Below are positions 6,010 to 47,856 of a stretch of 64,000 bases of DNA, one piece after another. The notes beneath the pieces were generated by a model, which saw nothing but the letters and a program-made list of their open reading frames with translations, was not told where the DNA came from and ran no database searches. Both the position numbers and the translations under genes were made by a program. This DNA is from Adineta vaga (Eukaryota > Animalia > Rotifera), in contig CP075494.1 of the NCBI GenBank assembly GCA_021613535.1, positions 16,120,001-16,184,000 of the forward strand, written 5' to 3'. The number at the start of each line of letters is the position of its first letter. Within the stretch, counting starts at the first letter, position 1.

Positions 6010-6219
6010 AAACTTCCTAATACTTTATCACAGAAGAATCTTTCCAAGTTGATACATGATTGGAGAAAAAATACTCGCATATTTCTTTTTCTTTTCTCAC
6101 CACGTGCTATTATTGTTGTTTTTTCTCTATTTACTTCACGGTGACAATGTTGAGTATTGCATTTTAGTCATAAAAACTGTTACTCGCTGCTTATTTGTTG
6201 TACGAATAGAAAATACTAT

Positions 6220-8973
6220 ATGGAACAGTGTATTCTGATTTCTCTTGATTCCTCGTCAAATTCATTAATTGATGATTTAAAACAATTTCAACATGTCTTT
6301 AATTCCATACAACAGTTCACTGAGACAAATGCTTGTATAGACTATATAACAAATTCAAAAGTCAAGAAAATTTTTCTCATTATTTCATTTGAAGTTGTTC
6401 AAATCATCTCATTGATCAATCATTTACCACAAATTAATTCTATCTACATTCTTTATAATAATCTTGAAGGTGAAAAGCCAGATGAAAATCTATTACAACA
6501 TGAAAAAGTCCAAAGCATATGTGTAACCATTGATCAACTAATTACACAAATAAAACATGATATCAAGCATTTAGTGACTAATCATATAGGAATCAATAGT
6601 TTACCGAATGGTAATATTGGCTCATTTAGTAGAAGTGAACAGAACGACCAAAACAATGTTCAAGAAGCAACCTTTATGTATTCACAAATCCTACGTGATA
6701 TTTTTGTTCAAGAAAACTATACAGAAACAGATAAAAATGAAATGATCGATTTCTTTCGGCAGCAGTATCATGGCAATAAAAGTGAATTAGAAAAGATCAC
6801 TCGATTTCAATGTGATTATACAGCTGAACGTGCTATCTATTGGTATACAATGGATGGATTTCTTTATCGTACGATTAATAGAGCATTGAGAATGCAAGAC
6901 ATTTTGACTCTTTATCAATTACGTTATTTTATCAAAGATTTACATTTACAATTGAAAAAATATCACGCAGAATTTTGTTTGAATTCGTTACATGAAACAT
7001 TGACTGTCTACCGTGGAGTTGGATTACCAATCGATGTATTCGAAAAATTAAAACCAGGTCATCTGGTATCATTCAGTGAATTCTTATCTACGAGTAAGAG
7101 ACAAGATTTGGCAAAAATCTATGTTCGAAACGATGACGATAATATGCAAGCGATTTTATTTGAAATTGAGTTAAATTGTGCTATTCAAACATCAACGCCC
7201 TTCGCGGATATATCTGGACAGAGTCAATTCGACATTGAAAAGGAGATTCTTTTTTCTATGGGTAGCGTTTTTCGAATTGAAAGTTTATATCGAACAACAG
7301 AAACACGTTGGCATATAAAACTCTCTCAAACATCAGATGAAGATCAACAATTGAAATTATTACATAATTGGTTAGACCAAGCCATATTTCAAGTTCAACA
7401 TTTTCACTCGAAATTGAGTTCACTTATGTTATTTATCTCTGATTATGATAAAGCTGAATATTTCTTACGAAAAACCGTAGGTCAACCAGGTTTTAGTGGA
7501 AGTACAGAAACTATTGCAGCAACGTTGGCAATTTTCGGTGAAATTTACTTTCATCAAAATAAATACGACGAGGCCATGACCTTATTTCAGCAAACAGTAG
7601 AATTATTAGAGAAAATTTCTGATAAAGACATATCGTCAACTGTACAACGATGTTACACAGGTTTAAGTGAAATTTATTTAGAACAACGACAATTTAAAAA
7701 AGGTAAGATGTGACAAACAGTCGAAAAGTAGTTTTTTCCTTTGCAATTTTGTACAATTTAGTGTAAAGATACGAACCTTTTTACAATATTTGTTTTAGCT
7801 TTGGAGTACAGTCAAAAATCGCTTGACATTATACTTTCTGATGAGTATATGAAGAGTATTGATCTTCTATTGGCAACGCGTTATAATAATATCGGACACA
7901 TTCATTACAAATTAGGACATACCGAACAGGCATTACATTATTTTCAAAAAGCGCTTGATTATACCGCTTCTCTCCTACCTAATATTCCTCTCTTATCAAA
8001 AATATTTTGTAATTTTGCAATGACTTATGAGCAATGTGAAGATTATTCGAATGCAGAATTGTATTGGCACAAAGGACTTGAACATCATCTTAAATCATTG
8101 CCTAATGATACAGATGCCACTGCGTATCTCTTTCAAGCTGTAGCATCCAATTTAATTGACCATAAGAAATATCATGAAGCCATTGAACTTTTAAAAAAAT
8201 CATTGATCGTTTGCAAAAGTCAAGGATCAAAGACATTATGTTGCTGCTATAAGATTTTAGCAACTGCTTATCATGCGATTGGAAAATCTCAATTCGCTAC
8301 CGATTATATTCACAAAGCTATCGAACTTGCACAAACTCTGACAGATATGGATTTAAGTATTATGTATGTGGATAGTGGTAATATTTATTATAGCATCCAA
8401 CAATATCAAGAGGCACTGATATCATATGAGAAAGCACTGAAATGTTCTCGACCATCTGCCAGACTTTCAATACACATGAAGATTTTTTTAACTTACACAA
8501 ATCAGAACAAATCGAATACGGCATTGCATTATTACGAGAATCACCTCCAAGAAAATATATCCGAACTTGATTCTGACGATCATATCTTAATACATTATTA
8601 TATTGGAGTGAATTATGATAGTTTAAAGAACTATGATCAAGCATTGAAATATCTCAAAATAGCTCAAGAACTGATGTTGTCCGTGTCAAAATACAAATCA
8701 TTTATTATCAATATACTCAAAAGAATGGGAGATATTCTAATCAAACAAGAACAATGGTCAGATGCAAATAATATTTTAAAAAAATTATCAACTTTTCAAT
8801 CATCGGCAAACGTTCATCTAAACATAGGTGTTATTAATATTAAGCAAAAGAATTTTCAAGATGCGATTCAAAGTTTACGAACGGCGCAAGAACTGGCTAA
8901 AGTGACTGGTGATTTATTCACATTAGAAATAGCCACAAGACAACTCAATTTATTGAGTAAAACAGAAAACTAA
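6220..8973 (+). CDS. ADP-ribosyltransferase (ARTC, R-S-E type) plus TPR-array protein; 2 exons (6220-7702, 7799-8973)
   Basis: AIYWYT, INRALR, VYRG, FLSTS and EKEILF motifs followed by many TPR repeats; GT-AG intron 7703-7798 joins the two ORFs in frame (G|CT = Ala). Confidence 0.9.
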
Positions 8974-14899: not shown

Positions 14900-16969
14900 A
14901 TGAATATTATAATTCCAATGGGTGGAATTGGAACTCGTTTTAGTAAAGAAAATTATCGTTTTCCTAAACCATTAATAAATATAATTGGTCGTCCAATGTT
15001 ATTTTGGTTATTAGATAATTTAGAAACTGAAGATAATGATATTATTTATTTAGGTTTATTAGAAAATCTTGATAAACAATTTAATTTAAGTCAAAGATTA
15101 CAAATTGAATATCCAAATAAAAAATTTGAAAAAATTTTATTAGATTTTGAAACACGTGGTGCTGTTGAAACATTATTTATTGTTTTACAATCAATGAATT
15201 CTGATCGATTACAATGTAAAACAATATCACTTGATTGTGATACGATTTATTTTCAATCAATTTTAAAACAATTTCGTTTATTATCAAATCAATTGAATAT
15301 TTCATTCTATTTTCAAGATAATGATGGAAAACCAATTTATTCGTATTTAAAATTTCATGACGATAATTCAAATTCAATTATTGATGTACGTGAAAAAATT
15401 ATGATTTCAAATAAAGCAAATACAGGTGCTTATGGTTTTCGTTCAGCACAAATTTTGAAAGATTATGCAATTCAATTATTAGATCAAGCTGTTGGTTATT
15501 CAGGAGAATATTATACAACTAACATTATGAAATTAATGTTAGAAAATCATGAAGAATTTCTTGGAATTGAAATTAAAAAAGAAAATTTTTGTTGTGTTGG
15601 AACACCTGATCAATTAAATGAATTTTTAAAATTATTAAAAGATCAAAAATCAAATTCTTTTCATATTCGTCAAATGAGATTTTGTTTTGATTTAGATAAT
15701 ACATTAGTTACTTATCCAACTATTTATGGTGATTATAATTCTGTTGAACCAATTCAAGAAAATATTCAATTAGTTAAAGAATTATATCAAGCTGGTCATT
15801 ATATTATTATTCAAACAGCAAGAAGAATGAAAACTCATCAAGGAAATATTGGTGCTGTTATTGCTGATATTGGTCATATTACTTTAAATACTTTACAAAA
15901 ATTTCAAATTCCTTATCATGAATTATTTTTTGGTAAACCATATGCGGATATTTATATTGATGATTCAGCTATTCATGCTTTAATTGATACAACAAAAGAA
16001 ATTGGTTGGTTAATTAATGATCAAGAATCGAATTTAAATAAAAAAACAAAACAAATTAAAGGCTTTATTTCATCAAGACATTTTCATACAATTGAACAAT
16101 TAGATCATTTAATTATTAAAAGTTCAACAACTTCTGATCTTGAAGGTGAAATTTATTTTTATAAAAATATTCCATTAGAAGTTGAAGATTTATTTCCAAA
16201 ATTTGATCGTATTGAAATTAATGAAGAAGCAGGAATATCTTCATTAGTTATTGAAAAAATTTCTGGAATAACTTATTCACATTTATTTACAAATTTATGT
16301 TTAACACAAGGACGTCTTTTAAAATTATTGTTTTCATTGAAACGTATTCATTTATCAAAAAAAGATCAATTGAAATCAAATATTTATTTAAATTATTCGG
16401 AAAAAATTCGTTTACGTTATGAAAAATTCAATGAAATTTATGCGAATTTAGATGAATATTTTCAAGAAACAAAACAAAATCAAATGATTAATTCAAAAGA
16501 TTTTTTAAAGAAATTTCTTAATTTTTTTGATGATTATGAAACAAATCAATATGGAAAACATAATTCAATAATACATGGTGATCCTGTATTTAGTAATATT
16601 TTATTAAAATCAAATAATGAAATTATCTTTTTAGATATGAGAGGTTTATTAGGAAAAGAACTTAGTTTAGAAGGTGATTTAAATTATGATTTATCGAAAA
16701 TTTATCAATCATTAACTGGTTATGATTTTATTTTATTAAATAAAATTGATTTTTTATCAAAATTATCAATAAAAACTTATCTTGAAGAACTTAAAAATAT
16801 TTTTCAAAATTTTCTTTTAAATGAATATTTAAATGAAATTAATTTTAAACATTTACAAATCATAACATCACAATTATATTTTACATTAATTCCATTACAT
16901 AATAATTTTCAACATCAAATTCAATTTTATCAACTTGCTTATGAACTTTATCAACAATTTTTACAATAA
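14900..16969 (+). CDS. Trifunctional NTP-sugar nucleotidyltransferase / HAD (capsule-biosynthesis-type) phosphatase / choline-aminoglycoside-type kinase, intronless
   Basis: Nucleotidyltransferase motifs IIPMGGIGTRF, PKPLI, TRGAVET, NTGAYGF, GTPDQL; HAD motifs FDLDNTL, TAR, GKPYADIYIDD; APH/ChoK kinase motifs HGDPVFSNIL, DMRG, YDLSK. Confidence 0.9.
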   Translation: MNIIIPMGGIGTRFSKENYRFPKPLINIIGRPMLFWLLDNLETEDNDIIYLGLLENLDKQFNLSQRLQIEYPNKKFEKILLDFETRGAVETLFIVLQSMNSDRLQCKTISLDCDTIYFQSILKQFRLLSNQLNISFYFQDNDGKPIYSYLKFHDDNSNSIIDVREKIMISNKANTGAYGFRSAQILKDYAIQLLDQAVGYSGEYYTTNIMKLMLENHEEFLGIEIKKENFCCVGTPDQLNEFLKLLKDQKSNSFHIRQMRFCFDLDNTLVTYPTIYGDYNSVEPIQENIQLVKELYQAGHYIIIQTARRMKTHQGNIGAVIADIGHITLNTLQKFQIPYHELFFGKPYADIYIDDSAIHALIDTTKEIGWLINDQESNLNKKTKQIKGFISSRHFHTIEQLDHLIIKSSTTSDLEGEIYFYKNIPLEVEDLFPKFDRIEINEEAGISSLVIEKISGITYSHLFTNLCLTQGRLLKLLFSLKRIHLSKKDQLKSNIYLNYSEKIRLRYEKFNEIYANLDEYFQETKQNQMINSKDFLKKFLNFFDDYETNQYGKHNSIIHGDPVFSNILLKSNNEIIFLDMRGLLGKELSLEGDLNYDLSKIYQSLTGYDFILLNKIDFLSKLSIKTYLEELKNIFQNFLLNEYLNEINFKHLQIITSQLYFTLIPLHNNFQHQIQFYQLAYELYQQFLQ

Positions 16970-19248: not shown

Positions 19249-20703
19249 TTATTGTAGATGAATCCTATAGTTATATATGATAAGAATAGTACAAAATGCA
19301 ATCATAATGAATAAAAATATGAAATAGAGAAATTGCCGAAAACAAGTAGCAAATAAAAATGGTTGTTTTCTTCGAAAAATACCAATGTCATATGTTTGAA
19401 TCATCGAATGATTTTTCTTTCGATAAAATTGACAAGAACAATTCTTTAGTGAAAGATTTTTTACTTTTGAAGTTATTGATTTCTCATTTTTAAATAATGA
19501 AAAATTTGTCAATTGATAATTTAAACCATCATAAACTAAATAAATTAAACGTTGTTTACTTCTTTGAATAATCCATTGTTCAAATTGATCACAATGAAAT
19601 GTTCCTAACCAATGAATAAATCGAAAAATTTGAAAAATAAATTGAATAGTATAGAAATGTAAATAATCCATTTTGACTTGATCTATTCCAAGTGCATGAG
19701 ATATTTTATCTCCTAAAAGTATTTGAGAAATGCCAATATTTAATTTATATGATAATGGTAATTTTCCATGAAGATATGAAGTCATTAAAATATGATGAAC
19801 CATATGTTTTGAAATATATGTTGGAGAATAAAAATGATAGAAAATCGATTGTGAAATAATTTCTGCTAAATGATATGATGATAAATAAACAAGATATTGA
19901 TCATCAATTCCAATTAACCAACCAATATAACGCCAAAAATGTAAATAGGCTTCTTTATCATCATTAGATAAATTAATATGAAAACGATTTTCAATACAAT
20001 ATAATAAACTAAATGAAAATCCAAGTAATGTGATAAGAGAATCTTCTTGATTGATTGGAATATCATTGCGTTGAGATTTCATAATTTTATATCGAACCAT
20101 TCCATGTAAAAGACGAACACGTATGATATCAGAAAATGTTTCATCAAATTGATCAATATCTCCACAAATACTTGTTGCAATCATTTGTAATGTTTCTACT
20201 AAGCGACGATGACTTCGATTTAAATCATTTGATGAAAGATAATCTGTTTTATTTAGAACATCATTTAATTGTTGAAATCCATAACCTAATACTAATGTAT
20301 AATATAAAATTGATGTTAACATTAAGGATAAATTTTTTAAAAAGAATTTTTGACCATGTAGAATTTGTTTACGATTAAACCATGATGGTTTTTGACGAAT
20401 ATATTCATGAAATTCAATTAAACATGACGGATTTAATGGATTCTTAACGAGAAAACTTTGAAGCCATTCATAAGTATCATCACCATGTTGAAATTCTTCA
20501 CTATATTGTTGAAAGAATTGATCAATTAAAGGATCACCTTGTTTTCGCCATTGATTCAATAGAGTTGGTGAGACATGTTCGTTAGTCCAAATAAAGATTT
20601 GATCATAAAAACATATTTGTTGACCAATTATTGGTTCCAATCGATTGGATGGTCTTACTGAAACTGCATCGATCAGTTCATTGTGTGAGAAAGGACAAGA
20701 CAT
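19249..20703 (-). CDS. ER-bound oxygenase MpaB / rubber-oxygenase-like (DUF2236) protein with C-terminal TM anchor, intronless
   Basis: GDPLID, RRLVET, RVRLLHGMVR (heme His), PINQED and YLHFWRYIGWLIGI motifs. Confidence 0.85.
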   Translation of the reverse strand: MSCPFSHNELIDAVSVRPSNRLEPIIGQQICFYDQIFIWTNEHVSPTLLNQWRKQGDPLIDQFFQQYSEEFQHGDDTYEWLQSFLVKNPLNPSCLIEFHEYIRQKPSWFNRKQILHGQKFFLKNLSLMLTSILYYTLVLGYGFQQLNDVLNKTDYLSSNDLNRSHRRLVETLQMIATSICGDIDQFDETFSDIIRVRLLHGMVRYKIMKSQRNDIPINQEDSLITLLGFSFSLLYCIENRFHINLSNDDKEAYLHFWRYIGWLIGIDDQYLVYLSSYHLAEIISQSIFYHFYSPTYISKHMVHHILMTSYLHGKLPLSYKLNIGISQILLGDKISHALGIDQVKMDYLHFYTIQFIFQIFRFIHWLGTFHCDQFEQWIIQRSKQRLIYLVYDGLNYQLTNFSLFKNEKSITSKVKNLSLKNCSCQFYRKKNHSMIQTYDIGIFRRKQPFLFATCFRQFLYFIFLFIMIAFCTILIIYNYRIHLQ

Positions 20704-25062: not shown

Positions 25063-25854
25063 TTATTTCTTTAATAAAAGAACTAATTGTATAATAGAAA
25101 TAAAAAAAGATAAATTATATCGTTTATGATTAGCAGAAGATTTAATTAAATATTTACTCCAATTATCCATTGATTTAACTGATCCAACACCAGTATAGTG
25201 TAGTCTTCGTATTGGTCCCTTATAGTAGACAGTACCAACACTAGAAACATCGATATCAACAGCAGCATAACCAACAACATAGGCTGTACCAACACCAGTA
25301 ACAAATAAGGAAACTTTTTCTATTGAACATCTTGTTCCATCAAATGTATTGACACCATTCAAATGAATCATTCCAGTACCATTAACATGACCAGATAAAG
25401 TTAAATGAGCTGTTCCAAACATTTCAATATCAAGTTTGGAAGAAATATCTACTTGAATATCTCCAGTACTTGATCCAGACATTTTCAATTTCAAATAAAT
25501 AGATTGAAGTGAATTTGTCGTTCGAATACTTTCTGTACCTGACATTTCAATCAATGATAAAGGTTTACGTATTCCAACATAAGCAATAATCTTTGGATAT
25601 TGTCCATTCTTAATCATAATCTTAAGAGTACTTTTAGATATAACACTAATACAACAATCATGAACCCATTGTTCAGTTTCTATTTGTAATGTACTCATTG
25701 GAGCATTTTTATTAAGTTGTGTTATTACATAACTAACAATACCATCGGATTCTAATGAAGTTATATCTTTGTCCAATTTATAATTAATTCGTCGTACTTC
25801 ACCACAAATCGTTGCTATTCCAAAGTAGAAAACGATAAATATTGATTTCAACAT
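25063..25854 (-). CDS. DUF2807 / GIN (autotransporter adhesin head) beta-helix protein with signal peptide and predicted GPI tail
   Basis: Repeated hxhSGxGxhxh units (MSGT, MSGSS, MFGTA, LNGVN, VTGVG, VSSVGTVYYKG); hydrophobic N- and C-termini. Confidence 0.8.
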   Translation of the reverse strand: MLKSIFIVFYFGIATICGEVRRINYKLDKDITSLESDGIVSYVITQLNKNAPMSTLQIETEQWVHDCCISVISKSTLKIMIKNGQYPKIIAYVGIRKPLSLIEMSGTESIRTTNSLQSIYLKLKMSGSSTGDIQVDISSKLDIEMFGTAHLTLSGHVNGTGMIHLNGVNTFDGTRCSIEKVSLFVTGVGTAYVVGYAAVDIDVSSVGTVYYKGPIRRLHYTGVGSVKSMDNWSKYLIKSSANHKRYNLSFFISIIQLVLLLKK

Positions 25855-42513: not shown

Positions 42514-45500
42514 TTAGTTTTTACAAATAAGTTTATGTTTATATAATTTCCAATCATTAGTTTGACATTCTTTTGAACAATAACGAGCTTGTTCACATTT
42601 GCCACAAAATTTCGATGCATTTGCTTCACAACAATATCGACACATATTTAATATCCATTCTGATTCGCTTTGCATTACAATCGAAGAAATATCATCAACA
42701 CGAATCGATGGTTTCATATCAACTTTTCCTATTCGTAAATAAGGATTGATAATATGGATTTTTTTTCCAACAGTATATGATTTCTTGATTAAATATTCAC
42801 CTTGTTCTTCTGAAATTCCATAAATGAGCATACGTTGACAATCAAAATTTTCATCTTCAATGACAAGATGAATTGATGGAATCCATGAGAATGTCTCTTC
42901 AATAATTGTTACAGAAAGTACACGTCCAGTATAAACATAATCTTTTCTTGGATCCATTTCTCGTAATGTAATTGATTTCAAACCAATTAATGATTTGTCT
43001 GTTTGTTGTTTAACTCGAGGTTTCACAGTCGTCGAAATACTTTTATAAGCTGGATTCCGTTTTTCATCTAACGTTGTTTTCTCCCATTCACGATGATTTT
43101 TAATAAGTTCTATTCTATAAGGATCAGTAAGATGTTTTTTACGATTATTAATTGGTTCTGGTTCTACATTGTTGATCGTAGATTCCATCATATCAACAAA
43201 TGGTTGTATAAATGCAATATTTTCTGATTTATACGGCAAAAAACATGGTAATTGTAGCTTTTCTGCCTCTTTACCTTCTTTATATCTTTTAAAGATCCAA
43301 TCCATTGCAACATCAGGCCTATAATCTTTCATATAACATTGTGCCATTTCATAATATGCTTCAGGAATTTTTCGATGATCTTTTGGAGCAATTGTAATAA
43401 ATTTTTCATAGGCTTTAATTGCTTCATTCATATCTTTACCTATATGACGTAATAGAATAGCTTTATGATACAATAATGTATAATTATTAGGTTCTATTTC
43501 AAGTCCATGGTTTATATTATATAAGCCAGTGTCAGATTGACGTCGAAATCCATGTACTGCGCCACTTATTAAGTAGAAATAGATTGATTTTGGATATTTT
43601 TGTTTACATATCTCAAGAAATTGTTCAACTAATCCATATGAATTGATATTTAATGTTGCAAAACAGAATCGAACATCTTCATCCAGTTGTGAAGTAATAG
43701 ATTTTGATTCTTTGGTACATCGAAATAATACTCTTTCGATGATGTTACTGACTTTTTTATGCATGTGACTTGGAATTTGAGCTACAATAGTTTCAATACG
43801 ATAACATTGTGAGAGTTCATGAACAAATATATTCTCTTGTTCTTCGGTTAAAGTTTCAAAAGAAATGAGTATATTTAGCGCTTGTGTGTAATGTTCTAAT
43901 GCAGTACGAAGTTTCTTAGCTGTTATTGAACCACGACGAGCATAGTCGCATAACATCTCGTAATCTTTCAAATATAAGTGTTCAGATGCCACTGATGCAG
44001 AATATTTACTTTGACATGACAATAAGTAGTTCTCCGCTGTTTTCATTGCTTTTAAAACATCCGGTGAACATCGTTGACGTGCTTCCAATGTTTTTATAAA
44101 CTTATCACGATCTCGTCGAGCGACAACATTACCTGATTCACAAGCACGATCGTACCAAAGTCTTGCCATTTGAAAATCATTTTTACTTAATCGAATCTCT
44201 GCTAAAGTCATCATAGCAACTGGATCACCTCTTTTTGCTGCTAATTCATGTAATTGATCAGCTTTTTCAAGATCCTTGTCAACGGCAAGACCATCTAAAT
44301 ACATTGAACCTAAATTATTAGCAGCCATTGCACTACCATGATCAGTAGCACGTTGATACCAATAAACAGCTAATGAAAGATCTTTACGAACACTAATACC
44401 TTCAAAATATCTCACTCCTAAAGCGTGTTCAGATTCAGCTACACCAATGTTTGGTAAACCTTTTACTATAGGATGTTCTGGTGGTTGTGCCGCTGCCTTT
44501 TCAAGCCATTCGCGAGCCAAATTATGATCTTTTTTTACACCTAGACCTTTATCTAATAATCGTGCTAAATTATACATTCCTTCAGCATTACCCGCATTTG
44601 CTGCTTTAGCAAAATATTTCGCAGCTTGTTCATAATCTTGTATAACATCGATATCTCCAAGTGCAAATTGATGTCCTTTCATTACATCAGCTGCTGATGG
44701 ATCTATTAATTTGAGTAAATTTCTATTTTTTCTCATCATTTCTGGATCCAAACCGAACTTTTCTTTTAAGTCATTTAAATTTTCTGGAATTGTTTTCCAA
44801 TTCGTTCGTGGATCAAGATATTCTTGTCGTGAATTTCGATGAACTATTATTCGACTCTCATCTAATGCTGTTTGTATTTCAATTTTTGTTGGATCAAGTG
44901 CAAATGCTCGTTCAAATGAATCAATTGCCTTTTCATGTTCTTCTAAGACAACATAGACTTGTCCAACACGAAAATGTGCTTTCCACCATGTTAACCAAAG
45001 TTTTCTTGCTAGTTTAGCATCTTTTAAAGCACGATCTAATTCTTTTGTTATATCATCATCTTCACAACTATCCGACGAATATAATTGTTGTTTATAAAAT
45101 GCTAATCGACTTGCAGCCATATTCGAAAAGAAAGTAGCTCGATCATGATCTGCAACACCTGATAAAACTGTTGCTTTAATAAAGAATGTTATTGCTTGAG
45201 AATAATTTTCATCTTTATGAGCTTTTGTACCCAAGGAATTGAAATGAAATGCTTCTTTTTTATTTTCTTCATTTATTGTTTGTTTTGGTGAATCAAATAC
45301 ACTATCATCTTTTAATTTATCTAATTCACTTTCAATATCACCAAATGTAACTAAAATTACAGATATATCAATCCATAATTGATTAAATTCTGTATTATCA
45401 ATAAATTTTGATGGATGATGAACTAATTGATTTCTTAAATCTCTTAATTGTTTTAGAAGTACATCTTCTTGATCAAGTTGTTGTATTTCATTTGTATTCA

Positions 45501-45795
45501 ATGTTTGTGGACGATTACTATACAATAAAATAGAAGATAAAGTTGATAAATCCCATTCATCTGTATTTCCATTCGAAACAGATATTTTTTGTGTAGGTGT
45601 TAAATTGATTTTCTTATTTTTTAAAATAACATTTGTTAAATAATTGTTTCCACATGTTGGTAAATCAACCCATGTTTGACCATTGTTGAATAGTGAATAA
45701 CGATCTTTAAATAAATTACGAAGTATATTATTTGAACGTGAGATTAACAAATCTAGTTTGAAATAATTACGAACTTCCGTTGATATATTAGCCAT
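42514..45795 (-). CDS. HEPN (DZIP3-like) - TPR - Sel1 repeats - TPR - MYND zinc-finger protein, intronless, 1093 aa
   Basis: WDLSTL...LRNQLVH..S...F..LW N-terminal domain; TPRs (KAHFRVGQVY..LE); Sel1 repeats (GMYNLA....G.GV.KD, ANNLG.MY.DG); C-terminal CRYC...CGKC....YCSKECQ..DW...HK..C. Confidence 0.88.
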   Translation of the reverse strand: MANISTEVRNYFKLDLLISRSNNILRNLFKDRYSLFNNGQTWVDLPTCGNNYLTNVILKNKKINLTPTQKISVSNGNTDEWDLSTLSSILLYSNRPQTLNTNEIQQLDQEDVLLKQLRDLRNQLVHHPSKFIDNTEFNQLWIDISVILVTFGDIESELDKLKDDSVFDSPKQTINEENKKEAFHFNSLGTKAHKDENYSQAITFFIKATVLSGVADHDRATFFSNMAASRLAFYKQQLYSSDSCEDDDITKELDRALKDAKLARKLWLTWWKAHFRVGQVYVVLEEHEKAIDSFERAFALDPTKIEIQTALDESRIIVHRNSRQEYLDPRTNWKTIPENLNDLKEKFGLDPEMMRKNRNLLKLIDPSAADVMKGHQFALGDIDVIQDYEQAAKYFAKAANAGNAEGMYNLARLLDKGLGVKKDHNLAREWLEKAAAQPPEHPIVKGLPNIGVAESEHALGVRYFEGISVRKDLSLAVYWYQRATDHGSAMAANNLGSMYLDGLAVDKDLEKADQLHELAAKRGDPVAMMTLAEIRLSKNDFQMARLWYDRACESGNVVARRDRDKFIKTLEARQRCSPDVLKAMKTAENYLLSCQSKYSASVASEHLYLKDYEMLCDYARRGSITAKKLRTALEHYTQALNILISFETLTEEQENIFVHELSQCYRIETIVAQIPSHMHKKVSNIIERVLFRCTKESKSITSQLDEDVRFCFATLNINSYGLVEQFLEICKQKYPKSIYFYLISGAVHGFRRQSDTGLYNINHGLEIEPNNYTLLYHKAILLRHIGKDMNEAIKAYEKFITIAPKDHRKIPEAYYEMAQCYMKDYRPDVAMDWIFKRYKEGKEAEKLQLPCFLPYKSENIAFIQPFVDMMESTINNVEPEPINNRKKHLTDPYRIELIKNHREWEKTTLDEKRNPAYKSISTTVKPRVKQQTDKSLIGLKSITLREMDPRKDYVYTGRVLSVTIIEETFSWIPSIHLVIEDENFDCQRMLIYGISEEQGEYLIKKSYTVGKKIHIINPYLRIGKVDMKPSIRVDDISSIVMQSESEWILNMCRYCCEANASKFCGKCEQARYCSKECQTNDWKLYKHKLICKN

Positions 45796-46179
45796 AAGAG
45801 AACTATTTTATTGAGATATGTCGTTTAATTCAGAAGAGCTGAAATGGCAGTAAATATTACAAACTTTTTCTTTTTCTTATCTTCAAAATTCTGTCGTTAG
45901 TCAAAGAAAAAAAGATGAAAAGAAACACATAAGAAGGCAACATTATTTATTTTTTCTCATGTGTTTTTTTTTCATTCTCAAGAGAATGAGTTGTGCTTCT
46001 CAAATGATACAAGAGAAGAAAAGGAACAACATACGAATGAAGGAAAGATTTCAAGCAAACCAATTGATGTACTATTGATAAGATATGAAAAGACTTTTGA
46101 AAGAAAAGGACATTGATATATAGATGATGACATTTGAAAAATGACTTAATTTTTTGTTGACGAAAACATTCAGGTAACA

Positions 46180-47631
46180 ATGTACCCAAGTTTTATCAAA
46201 AAATACTTGACTTTTATACCAACAACAGTGGAACAAAATGAAAAATGGATTCATATAGCGGAACAAGGAGCAAGCTTGAATACCTATTTTTTGGACATTG
46301 AAAATAGTCACCTGAAGTTTTTGAACGATACTCTCAGTGATAAAAACTTTGTTAGTAGTTTGACCAATTATCACAAGAAACTCGTCATGGATAAGATGAA
46401 AACTTTACAATATGAATTTCCCAAACTAACAATCAATCTATATTCGGATTTTAAATCTCTTCGATTTTTATTTACAGATGATGTTCCTGTGAATTTACAA
46501 GAACATTTGATTCAATTACTAAAACCAATCAATGAAGAGTTTTCAAACTTTATTTATTCATGGGAAATATTTAGAAAAACAAATCACTCCGAAATCTGGT
46601 TTCGTGCTGGCTTTGGACAATCCGCCGATCAGGCAAATATTGCTGCTCGATATTCACGTCGTATGAAAATGAATACTTTCCAATCTTACGATGAAACTTC
46701 ATTTAGAATAATTTTACAGAATGAATTTCAAATGGTTGAAAACATCCGACAAACATTGTGTCATATATTCAAAGATACTTTGGTGCTTGAGGGAAATACA
46801 TTACATGAAAATGTTTTTGATATTATTCGTAGAAATATCGATAGCGAACAAAATATTTCAAATGTGATCAAACGACATTATGGTGTGAGTTTGATTTCTT
46901 TTGAAACTATTAATATCCTTCGAATATACGTAAAACTTATCGATACTTTTCAACCATGCTTATATATTCCAAAACGAGAATTTGCAAATATGAACGCGGC
47001 GAAGTTTGGAGGTTTTTCAGCAGATATTATAGGTTTAGGTTCGAAAAATCTTAAAGCAACAGCTGAAGCTCTGACAAAAAGCGATACTATCGATGAAGTT
47101 TTCGTACATACCCGTACTGCAGAGAGAACAGTAACTGAACAATTCGTTGAACAAAAGCGTTATTTTGAACGTATACTTAGAAAAACAATCGCTTCTGACA
47201 AATTTAAACTTACATATTCCGGAGATGATTGCGTAGTCATAGCAGCAGCACCTATTACAGATGATGAAAAAGAGGCAATTCTGTTCGAATTAAATAATGA
47301 TCAATATGCATGGAAATATCGCCTTGCATTTATTTCAGATGGAGTGAAAGATTGTGATGTAAGAAATATATTAAGTACTCACGGAGAAAGTATAGAAAAA
47401 CTGTTGAGAAAATCTTTAGAGAACGAGCTTGATCCAAGTAAATTAAAGAATCTCACATTTGGTATTGATATGAGAACACGTGAAGTCAATCAAGGAAGTG
47501 TTAGATTGATTTTAGTCGAATCTCACAGAGTAACATTCAATTCTAATGAGTATAAGACTATTCAAGAAATATTTAGGAAAGTTCTAGACGAAATAAACGA
47601 AATATTTAAATCTAAATATCAAACTGTTTAA
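46180..47631 (+). CDS. Hypothetical 483-aa protein with two palm-like (GGDEF/Cas10-like) motif sets, intronless
   Basis: The long clean ORF supports a gene. FLDIENSHLKFLND..YSDFK and FSADIIGLG...YSGDD suggest a palm/nucleotidyl-cyclase fold, but the function is tentative. Confidence 0.65.
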   Translation: MYPSFIKKYLTFIPTTVEQNEKWIHIAEQGASLNTYFLDIENSHLKFLNDTLSDKNFVSSLTNYHKKLVMDKMKTLQYEFPKLTINLYSDFKSLRFLFTDDVPVNLQEHLIQLLKPINEEFSNFIYSWEIFRKTNHSEIWFRAGFGQSADQANIAARYSRRMKMNTFQSYDETSFRIILQNEFQMVENIRQTLCHIFKDTLVLEGNTLHENVFDIIRRNIDSEQNISNVIKRHYGVSLISFETINILRIYVKLIDTFQPCLYIPKREFANMNAAKFGGFSADIIGLGSKNLKATAEALTKSDTIDEVFVHTRTAERTVTEQFVEQKRYFERILRKTIASDKFKLTYSGDDCVVIAAAPITDDEKEAILFELNNDQYAWKYRLAFISDGVKDCDVRNILSTHGESIEKLLRKSLENELDPSKLKNLTFGIDMRTREVNQGSVRLILVESHRVTFNSNEYKTIQEIFRKVLDEINEIFKSKYQTV

Positions 47632-47813
47632 CGTTTTCTAATATTGTGTTTACAAAGAACATGGCACTATGTGGGGAAAACGAAATCGTATACGGAGTTC
47701 GTATTCTTCATCTTGGGTATTCTTTCCTTTTTCATGTATTATTACCATATGTATTTATGATTGTTTGTTGGATGCATTATTTTCTATTCTTTTGTATTGC
47801 AAATAAACGATTA

Positions 47814-47856
47814 CAGTAAAACCTCTCTATAATGGACACTATGAGAGGTTTTACTG
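47814..47856. mobile_element. 43-bp pogo/Tigger-like micro-MITE
   Basis: Perfect 14-bp TIRs cagtaaaacctctc / gagaggttttactg; TA on the left, CA on the right. Confidence 0.6.

Follow-up and report, generated by a model that had tools for sequence, protein, structure and literature searches.

A chromosome of the bdelloid rotifer Adineta vaga carries an intronless reading frame whose translation recalls the palm domains of GGDEF and Cas10 enzymes. The locus raises the question of where such a gene came from, what its product might synthesize, and whether it still serves the animal. The window analyzed here is a stretch of 64,000 nucleotides (C5:16.12-16.18 Mb) from a genome of 100.8 Mb in six contigs. 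Positions refer to the window, residues follow rotifer numbering, and residue counts are given over 186 bacterial homologues. The gene and the sequence directly before it are the following:

46120..46179, plus strand: probably what is left of a now decayed N-terminal extension, in the frame of the ORF; tblastx to the extension of the related sequence P0002 reaches 46120
46180..47631, plus strand: tandem-palm ORF, intronless and uninterrupted from ATG to TAA, 483 aa

Protein and profile searches both find this ORF in a single copy, with no homoeologue in the A. vaga genome, and its product has no signal peptide. Three in-frame stops lie within about 25 codons upstream of the ATG. The public record of the gene (I4U23_027146, P0001) is a spliced model of 370 aa that starts at M71 and removes residues 391-411 as a 63-nt intron. 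Because the excised region contains E403, E406, K407 and R410, each kept in at least 180 of the 186 homologues, the spliced product was rejected, and the unspliced 483-aa ORF is, from this conservation, the likely gene product. With its start at M71 and its invariant motifs spliced out, the public model would have masked the palm gene.

Bacterial relatives and the architecture of their proteins

A word search returned 41 relatives, the bacterial ones mostly 41-49% identical over about 98% of the query; those with names belong to Bdellovibrio or Pseudobdellovibrionaceae, apart from one MAG labelled Bacillota. Similarly, 55 loci emerged from a scan of genomes, whose titles name Bdellovibrionota throughout except for the same Bacillota-labelled MAG, and a profile search extended the family to 610 clusters at 50% identity. 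The family is carried by 65 of 121 sampled Bdellovibrionaceae genomes, usually in one copy. In a FastTree phylogeny of 83 sequences, the rotifer protein and P0002 form a clade on a long stem (support 1.0) that is nested within a Bdellovibrio-dominated clade (support 0.94); its sister group is placed at a support of 0.50 only. Homologue search, genome scan and tree agree and, at the level of sequence, confirm horizontal acquisition from Bdellovibrionota; an earlier note on this DNA had proposed a bacterial origin and had pointed to similar hypothetical proteins in that group. The same note had called the protein an orphan, a label that must be withdrawn in view of the unnamed family of 610 clusters.

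The family has so far escaped naming. Pfam, NCBIfam, PADLOC and PDB sequence searches gave no match for the palm protein, candidate matches to RNase HIII and globin were rejected as far below threshold, and no description of the family was found in the searchable, incomplete portion of the literature. The only named eukaryotic match is A. vaga itself. Among the best 150 of the 610 profile matches, P0002 was the only further candidate for a eukaryotic copy; it lies on a 2.4-kb contig, is 58% identical to the rotifer protein, likewise lacks signal peptide and carrier, and shows no long ORF in its 482-base 5' flank. Judged by its sequence, it may be another bdelloid's gene.

Full-length bacterial homologues are mostly 720-1100 aa long, and 133 of the 186 begin with a hydrophobic, signal-like N-terminus, as scored by a crude hydrophobicity test only. 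A Cys-rich domain ending in a C-x-DP-x-G segment, referred to here as the carrier, precedes the palm module. The rotifer protein lacks the N-terminal 300 residues of its bacterial homologues, and the carrier is absent from the rotifer genome. The earlier view of a bacterial protein thus holds for the origin, but what the rotifer possesses corresponds to the C-terminal cargo of a secreted bacterial protein. Per bacterial genome, the carrier is found in two to four proteins with unrelated C-termini, some of them helical and some HExxH zincin-like, and its language-model neighbours include MafB, EndoU-toxin and PT-TG clusters, with scores that serve as leads only.

In Bdellovibrio, the palm gene is syntenic, usually single-copy and flanked by housekeeping or transport genes. 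Neither CRISPR genes nor a conserved sensor or effector neighbour appeared in the loci compared, and three genomes that have the palm gene gave no match to Cas10 palm 2 (PF22335); a CRISPR, CBASS or Panoptes context was rejected on the neighbour genes. Like bacterial polymorphic toxins and effectors, the palm proteins have a conserved carrier at the N-terminus, to which exchangeable enzyme cargoes are joined at the C-terminus, and, by hydrophobicity, an export signal. They differ in lying outside variable cassettes and in the absence of an adjacent immunity gene, no conserved small downstream ORF of 80 aa or more being present in the loci compared. This architecture suggests that the bacterial palm proteins are polymorphic, exported, prey-directed effectors.

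Other features of these genomes deserve mention in their own right. The unnamed carrier family of Bdellovibrio, with its signal peptide and Cys-rich domain, has no Pfam match and bears at least five different C-terminal cargoes (L074/L089, L091, L094, L088 and L090/L093/L096/L097/L098), making it a candidate predation-effector system of its own. A 2418-aa protein from Oligoflexia (P0169, L054:3654-10910) joins HExxH, ART-like and tandem-palm modules in one chain, its ART match being weak (E 0.005). A single Bdellovibrio subgroup has an exporter operon of TolC/MFP/MacB type immediately behind the palm gene and on its strand (10 loci: L003, L004, L005, L012, L014, L015, L020, L022, L032 and L056).

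Predicted fold, conserved residues and candidate activity

Profile-profile comparisons with GGDEF and Cas10 were not significant (hhalign probability 8% at best), nor was the comparison of palm 1 with palm 2, which leaves predicted structure and conservation as the basis of the family assignment. The AlphaFold2 model of the whole protein (pLDDT 91.5, pTM 0.88) is divided as follows:

46207..46719, plus strand: palm 1, GGDEF-like including the N-terminal helix, residues about 10-180
46720..46959, plus strand: helical linker domain between the palms, AF2 helices 173-256
47005..47520, plus strand: palm 2, residues about 276-447

Palm 1 superposes on the GGDEF domain of LapD (VIA Z 13.6, rmsd 2.8 over 142 aa) and on the mCpol enzyme OptS (Z 10.9, rmsd 2.4). 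Residues 262-483 folded alone reach a pLDDT of 92.2, and palm 2 matches OptS (Z 9.4, rmsd 2.6 over 116 aa) and Cmr2 palm 2 (Z 8.2); its matches to OptS, GGDEF, class III cyclases and Cmr2 palm 2 are effectively tied, and for both palms class III cyclases come within 1-3 Z of the best matches. Foldseek with the whole model ranked Cmr2/Csm1 first (best E 1.4e-4), yet with a TM of 0.23-0.30 and an rmsd of about 20, so that whole-chain superposition on Cas10 is poor despite the two palms and the high pTM. The language-model neighbours of the palm protein are mCpol clusters (0.92). Taken individually, both palms match those of GGDEF, OptS and Cas10, and the model confirms two palms of GGDEF/mCpol/Cas10 type. 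The earlier note had claimed such a tandem-palm protein and had made the claim depend on conserved acidic residues and a palm-type structure; the predicted structure is palm-type and the acidic residues are conserved in the following motifs:

46300..46329, plus strand: E41-N-x3-K46-x2-N49-D50, candidate strand-1 acidic ligand and GGDEF-like K/N/D helix, from conservation and the OptS alignment
46354..46377, plus strand: S/T59-x2-T62-N63-x2-K66 helix, candidate base-reading face, spaced like OptS S30/N34
46444..46455, plus strand: palm-1 hairpin S89-D90-F-K92, non-canonical, with one Asp and a Lys, between DSSP strands 84-89 and 93-99
47023..47049, plus strand: D282-x2-G-x-G-x2-N290, strand-1 Asp and loop of palm 2, D282 in 186/186
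47215..47232, plus strand: palm-2 hairpin Y346-S-G-D349-D350-C351, from conservation
47380..47409, plus strand: H401-G-E403-x2-E406-K407-x2-R410 helix, with E403 in 185/186, E406 in 183/186, K407 in 182/186 and R410 in 180/186

The motifs first quoted from the sequence are all present (FLDIENSHLKFLND at residues 37-50, YSDFK at 88-92, FSADIIGLG at 279-287 and YSGDDCVV at 346-353), and each forms the end of strand 1 or the hairpin between strands 2 and 3 of its palm model. The proposed YSDFK hairpin and D..G...GGDD-like second module are borne out by D90, D282, D349 and D350, conserved in at least 183 of the 186 homologues. Palm 1 has D90 alone in its hairpin, together with K92 (both 183/186), and no acidic dyad, whereas palm 2 shows a near-invariant S-G-D-D hairpin (G348 185/186, D349 184/186, D350 185/186). 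The reading of strand 1 survives in part. Its GGDEF-like K/N/D pattern is real (K46 169/186, N49 181/186), but D39, the Asp of FLDIE, is variable (Asp in 115/186, Phe in the closest relative) and was rejected as the catalytic Asp; the conserved acidic residue is E41 (167/186), five residues before K46 as in a gapless GGDEF register. Conservation extends to R160 in palm 1 and to N290, R312, E315 and R381 in palm 2, and the invariant Arg and Lys residues comprise R160, R266, R312, R381, R395, K407 and R410.

In most bacteria, the palm-2 hairpin reads C-S-G-D-D-C, both Cys being present in 151 sequences, neither in 33 and one only in 1. We read this co-varying pair as a putative disulfide, which would suit an exported protein. 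The rotifer hairpin, with Y346 and C351, keeps half of the pair, and the complete pair has been lost in both the rotifer protein and P0002.

Comparison with characterized enzymes places these residues in context. In OptS, D6 is catalytic and S30 and N34 read the base (PMC12657218); by alignment offset (35 for E41), both E41 and D282 fall on D6 if strand 1 is gapless. A strand-1 acidic residue combined with a small-acidic-acidic hairpin marks the GGDEF/CRISPR-polymerase/Thg1 branch, distinct from mononucleotide cyclases (PMC2904730). Here E41 and D282 end strand 1 and palm 2 contributes the G348-D349-D350 dyad, by which model and sequence place the protein in the palm-fold (RRM) nucleotidyltransferase superfamily, within the GGDEF/mCpol/Cas10/Thg1 branch, with predicted activity. 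In Cas10, palm 2 gives the two-metal site, while palm 1 holds a second ATP with Asp, Ser and lysines (PMC11734703). The residue pattern of the rotifer protein fits such a division of labour by analogy, and a further metal site like that of GGDEF and OptS dimers could be made up of E41 and D90. As for the base, Hypr GGDEF enzymes carry Ser/Thr for Asp at the specificity position, which permits ATP use (PMC9140294). Because Thr/Ser and Asn (T59 173/186, N63 177/186) replace the guanine-selecting Asp in the candidate base-reading helix, the comparison, one of spacing only, hints that this helix reads the base and that the product contains adenine.

Despite these parallels, the protein falls outside each known family. 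It resembles Cas10 (Csm1/Cmr2) in having two palms per chain, a strand-1 Asp and GDD hairpin in palm 2, a non-canonical palm-1 hairpin and the top Foldseek matches. It differs in lacking an HD domain and a Pfam Cas10 match, in S-G-D-D rather than G-G-D-D, in a whole-chain TM of at most 0.30 without sequence similarity, and in belonging to a family that stands outside CRISPR context and is exported in bacteria. Cas10 membership was rejected for want of a Cas10 profile match and because the neighbours are housekeeping genes, not a type III CRISPR-Cas locus. Each palm superposes on the mCpol/Panoptes 2',3'-c-di-AMP synthase OptS (rmsd 2.4-2.6), with E41 and D282 on D6 and a T/N pair like S30/N34. 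OptS, however, is an oligomer of 120-aa chains with a single palm each, and its gene is accompanied by that of a membrane effector in defence against phages. The palm family instead joins two palms and a helical insert in one chain, lacks a partner gene and, in bacteria, bears a secretion signal; mCpol (PF18182)/Panoptes membership was rejected on the absent Pfam match, the two palms and the lack of a conserved partner gene. GGDEF diguanylate cyclases, including the Hypr enzyme Bd0367, share the fold of palm 1 (Z up to 13.6) and the acidic-x4-K-x2-N-D motif, and the rotifer Thr/Ser lies near the Hypr specificity position (PMC9140294), with the register apparently shifted by one. The rotifer protein nevertheless has no GG[D/E]EF motif, no Pfam GGDEF match and no sensory domains, and it carries a fused second palm; GGDEF (PF00990) membership was rejected, given the hairpins YSDFK and SGDD and the hhalign probability of 8%. 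The resemblance first noted to GGDEF and Cas10 therefore stands for the fold and fails for membership in either family.

From model and conservation, we infer that the palm protein, whose set of predicted catalytic residues is complete, would be a two-metal cyclic di- or oligonucleotide synthase, a reading to which we assign a probability of roughly 0.55. Origin and fold being equal, it might instead be a Thg1-like or other template-independent nucleotidyltransferase, which would attach NMPs to the ends of RNA or to a different acceptor bound by palm 1, or would build linear oligomers. The G-D-D hairpin is common to Thg1 and polymerases (PMC2904730), the many invariant Arg and Lys residues could bind nucleic acid, and the palm-1 hairpin is non-canonical; but Thg1 is absent among the best 50 structural matches for either palm, and the nearest matches are makers of cyclic nucleotides, which leaves this alternative unlikely. 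Slightly less probable again is a class III-like mononucleotide cyclase (cAMP, cGMP or cUMP) in which one chain would act as a pseudo-heterodimer. Matches to adenylyl, guanylyl and uridylyl cyclases do reach Z 8-11, and the two-domain mammalian adenylyl cyclase aligns over 262 residues, though at an rmsd of 7.3; palm 1 nonetheless matches GGDEF better (Z 12-13.6), sharing its N-terminal helix and K-x2-N-D motif, and the acidic dyad differs from the cyclase pattern (PMC2904730).

Integration, signs of selection and neighbourhood in the rotifer genome

The palm ORF lies in a 16.9-Mb chromosome amid animal-type genes. Its GC content is 31.6% and its GC3 0.23, compared with a GC3 of 0.05-0.29 in neighbouring ORFs and 0.41-0.57 in Bdellovibrio homologues. 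In the 2013 DNA run X3, every bin has reads, whether in the palm gene, in the adjacent HEPN gene or in the flanking sequence, and the gene is covered about as deeply as its flanks; a contig from this run bridges the 3' end of the gene and allelic differences are present, no single contig covering the whole stretch. The gene is part of the A. vaga genome and was transferred horizontally, in a species whose foreign genes amount to about 8.9% of all genes and in a group where such transfer is common (bioRxiv 10.1101/2020.06.16.155473).

Between the rotifer ORF and P0002, dN is 0.28 and dS 1.08 (dN/dS about 0.26). The rotifer protein keeps 47 of the 49 columns that are 90% conserved, both substitutions being conservative, and together with 483 intact codons beside a stop-bearing upstream remnant this points to selection on the palm module. 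A silent or decaying copy with no current role in A. vaga, the bacterial enzyme being real, is about as improbable as the mononucleotide cyclase. In its favour, RNA coverage is not convincing, since a presumed RNA run yielded intergenic pieces besides a contig of 269 bases within the ORF, two further runs of the species yielded nothing of use, and the gene is not among the rows listed of published expression tables. Its N-terminal extension appears decayed, and it is single-copy, without homoeologue and without another named eukaryotic match. The intact frame, the conserved columns, the low dN/dS and the host-like codon composition speak against decay.

The divergent neighbour at 42514-45795 (minus strand) is an intronless HEPN(DZIP3-like)-TPR-Sel1-MYND gene with an R-x4-H motif, from a family with at least five full-length copies in the A. 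vaga genome, the motif being kept in all those inspected. The two head-to-head genes might form a signal-and-effector defence pair, as the 385 bases between their divergent start codons and the R-x4-H motif (in a weak Pfam match) would allow. This is very improbable, given that at least four other full-length HEPN paralogues do not adjoin a palm gene, the HEPN gene has no CARF or SAVED sensor domain, and bacterial palm homologues have no conserved effector neighbour. Bacterial contamination or misassembly, to which an intronless gene with bacterial relatives only might point, is scarcely credible given the chromosomal setting, the base composition, the X3 depth, bridging contig and allelic differences, and the missing bacterial N-terminus.

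Elsewhere, the window looks rich in foreign genes. An intronless 689-aa ORF at 14900-16969 (plus strand) has no Pfam match at 1e-3; by eye, it begins like a sugar nucleotidyltransferase and also contains the DxDxT motif of HAD proteins and an HGD motif like that of aminoglycoside kinases. It is probably another foreign gene. An ADP-ribosyltransferase and TPR gene lies at 6157-8973 (plus strand; Pfam ART E 2e-12), and two genes of microbial type occur on the minus strand, one MpaB/rubber-oxygenase-like (19249-20703) and one with a DUF2807 GIN domain (25063-25854). Just 3' of the palm gene, at 47797-47855, run X3 shows an allelic insertion of 16 bases and several runs have loose ends, which may reflect a short repeat or a polymorphic element.

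Proposed mechanism and meaning for predator and animal

In the cyclic nucleotide synthase reading, the two palms would close on each other as a single-chain counterpart of a GGDEF/mCpol dimer or around a pocket like that between Palm1 and Palm2 of Cas10. Palm 2 would use D282 and the D349/D350 pair to bind the triphosphate of a first NTP together with two Mg ions, while palm 1 (E41, K46, N49, D90 and K92) would hold the second NTP and may provide a second metal site. Attack of a ribose hydroxyl on the alpha-phosphate would then yield, without template, a cyclic di- or oligonucleotide that probably contains adenine.

For Bdellovibrio, we infer that the enzyme's target is most likely the prey, whose NTPs it would deplete or whose nucleotide signalling it would disrupt; delivery into the prey cytoplasm is assumed, and export away from the predator's own NTP pool would account for the absent immunity gene. 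In our best reading, the rotifer gene is a domesticated fragment of such an exported protein, of which the catalytic module only was retained. The rotifer protein is probably cytosolic, because the palm module was kept and signal peptide and carrier are gone, and would most likely serve as an antibacterial or signalling enzyme. Searches of the A. vaga genome, exon by exon, with STING, SAVED and GGDEF profiles gave no match, those for STING and SAVED being run without a positive control. A comparable case is offered by the Min-Wnt toxins domesticated in bdelloids (PMC12419801), where a stand-alone bacterial effector-type domain likewise moved into rotifers; the palm gene differs in being single-copy rather than expanded, in its palm nucleotidyltransferase fold and in its Bdellovibrio donor. 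More tentatively, these proteins might constitute a class of CRISPR-independent tandem-palm cyclic oligonucleotide synthases, exported by Bdellovibrionota against prey, possibly redox-gated by the hairpin disulfide, and captured by an animal in which they became active in the cytosol.

Horizontal transfer into bdelloids is common; what makes this locus of interest is an enzyme family without a name, the effector-type architecture of its members and the fact that an animal has kept one of them. The analysis brings to light a large, widely retained family in predatory bacteria, with implications for the way Bdellovibrio overcomes its prey and for the number of times that a double palm has evolved. 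If active, the enzyme would be an exported weapon that synthesizes a nucleotide signal, and would parallel the Cas10 double palm outside CRISPR. The rotifer copy, shortened by nature and probably soluble, lends itself to biochemistry. To our knowledge, a palm-fold di- or oligonucleotide synthase would be unusual in an animal, where we know of no such role for this fold. If the more tentative reading is true, cyclic di-/oligonucleotides would be made in a metazoan pathway by the GGDEF/Cas10 palm fold and not by cGAS-like enzymes.
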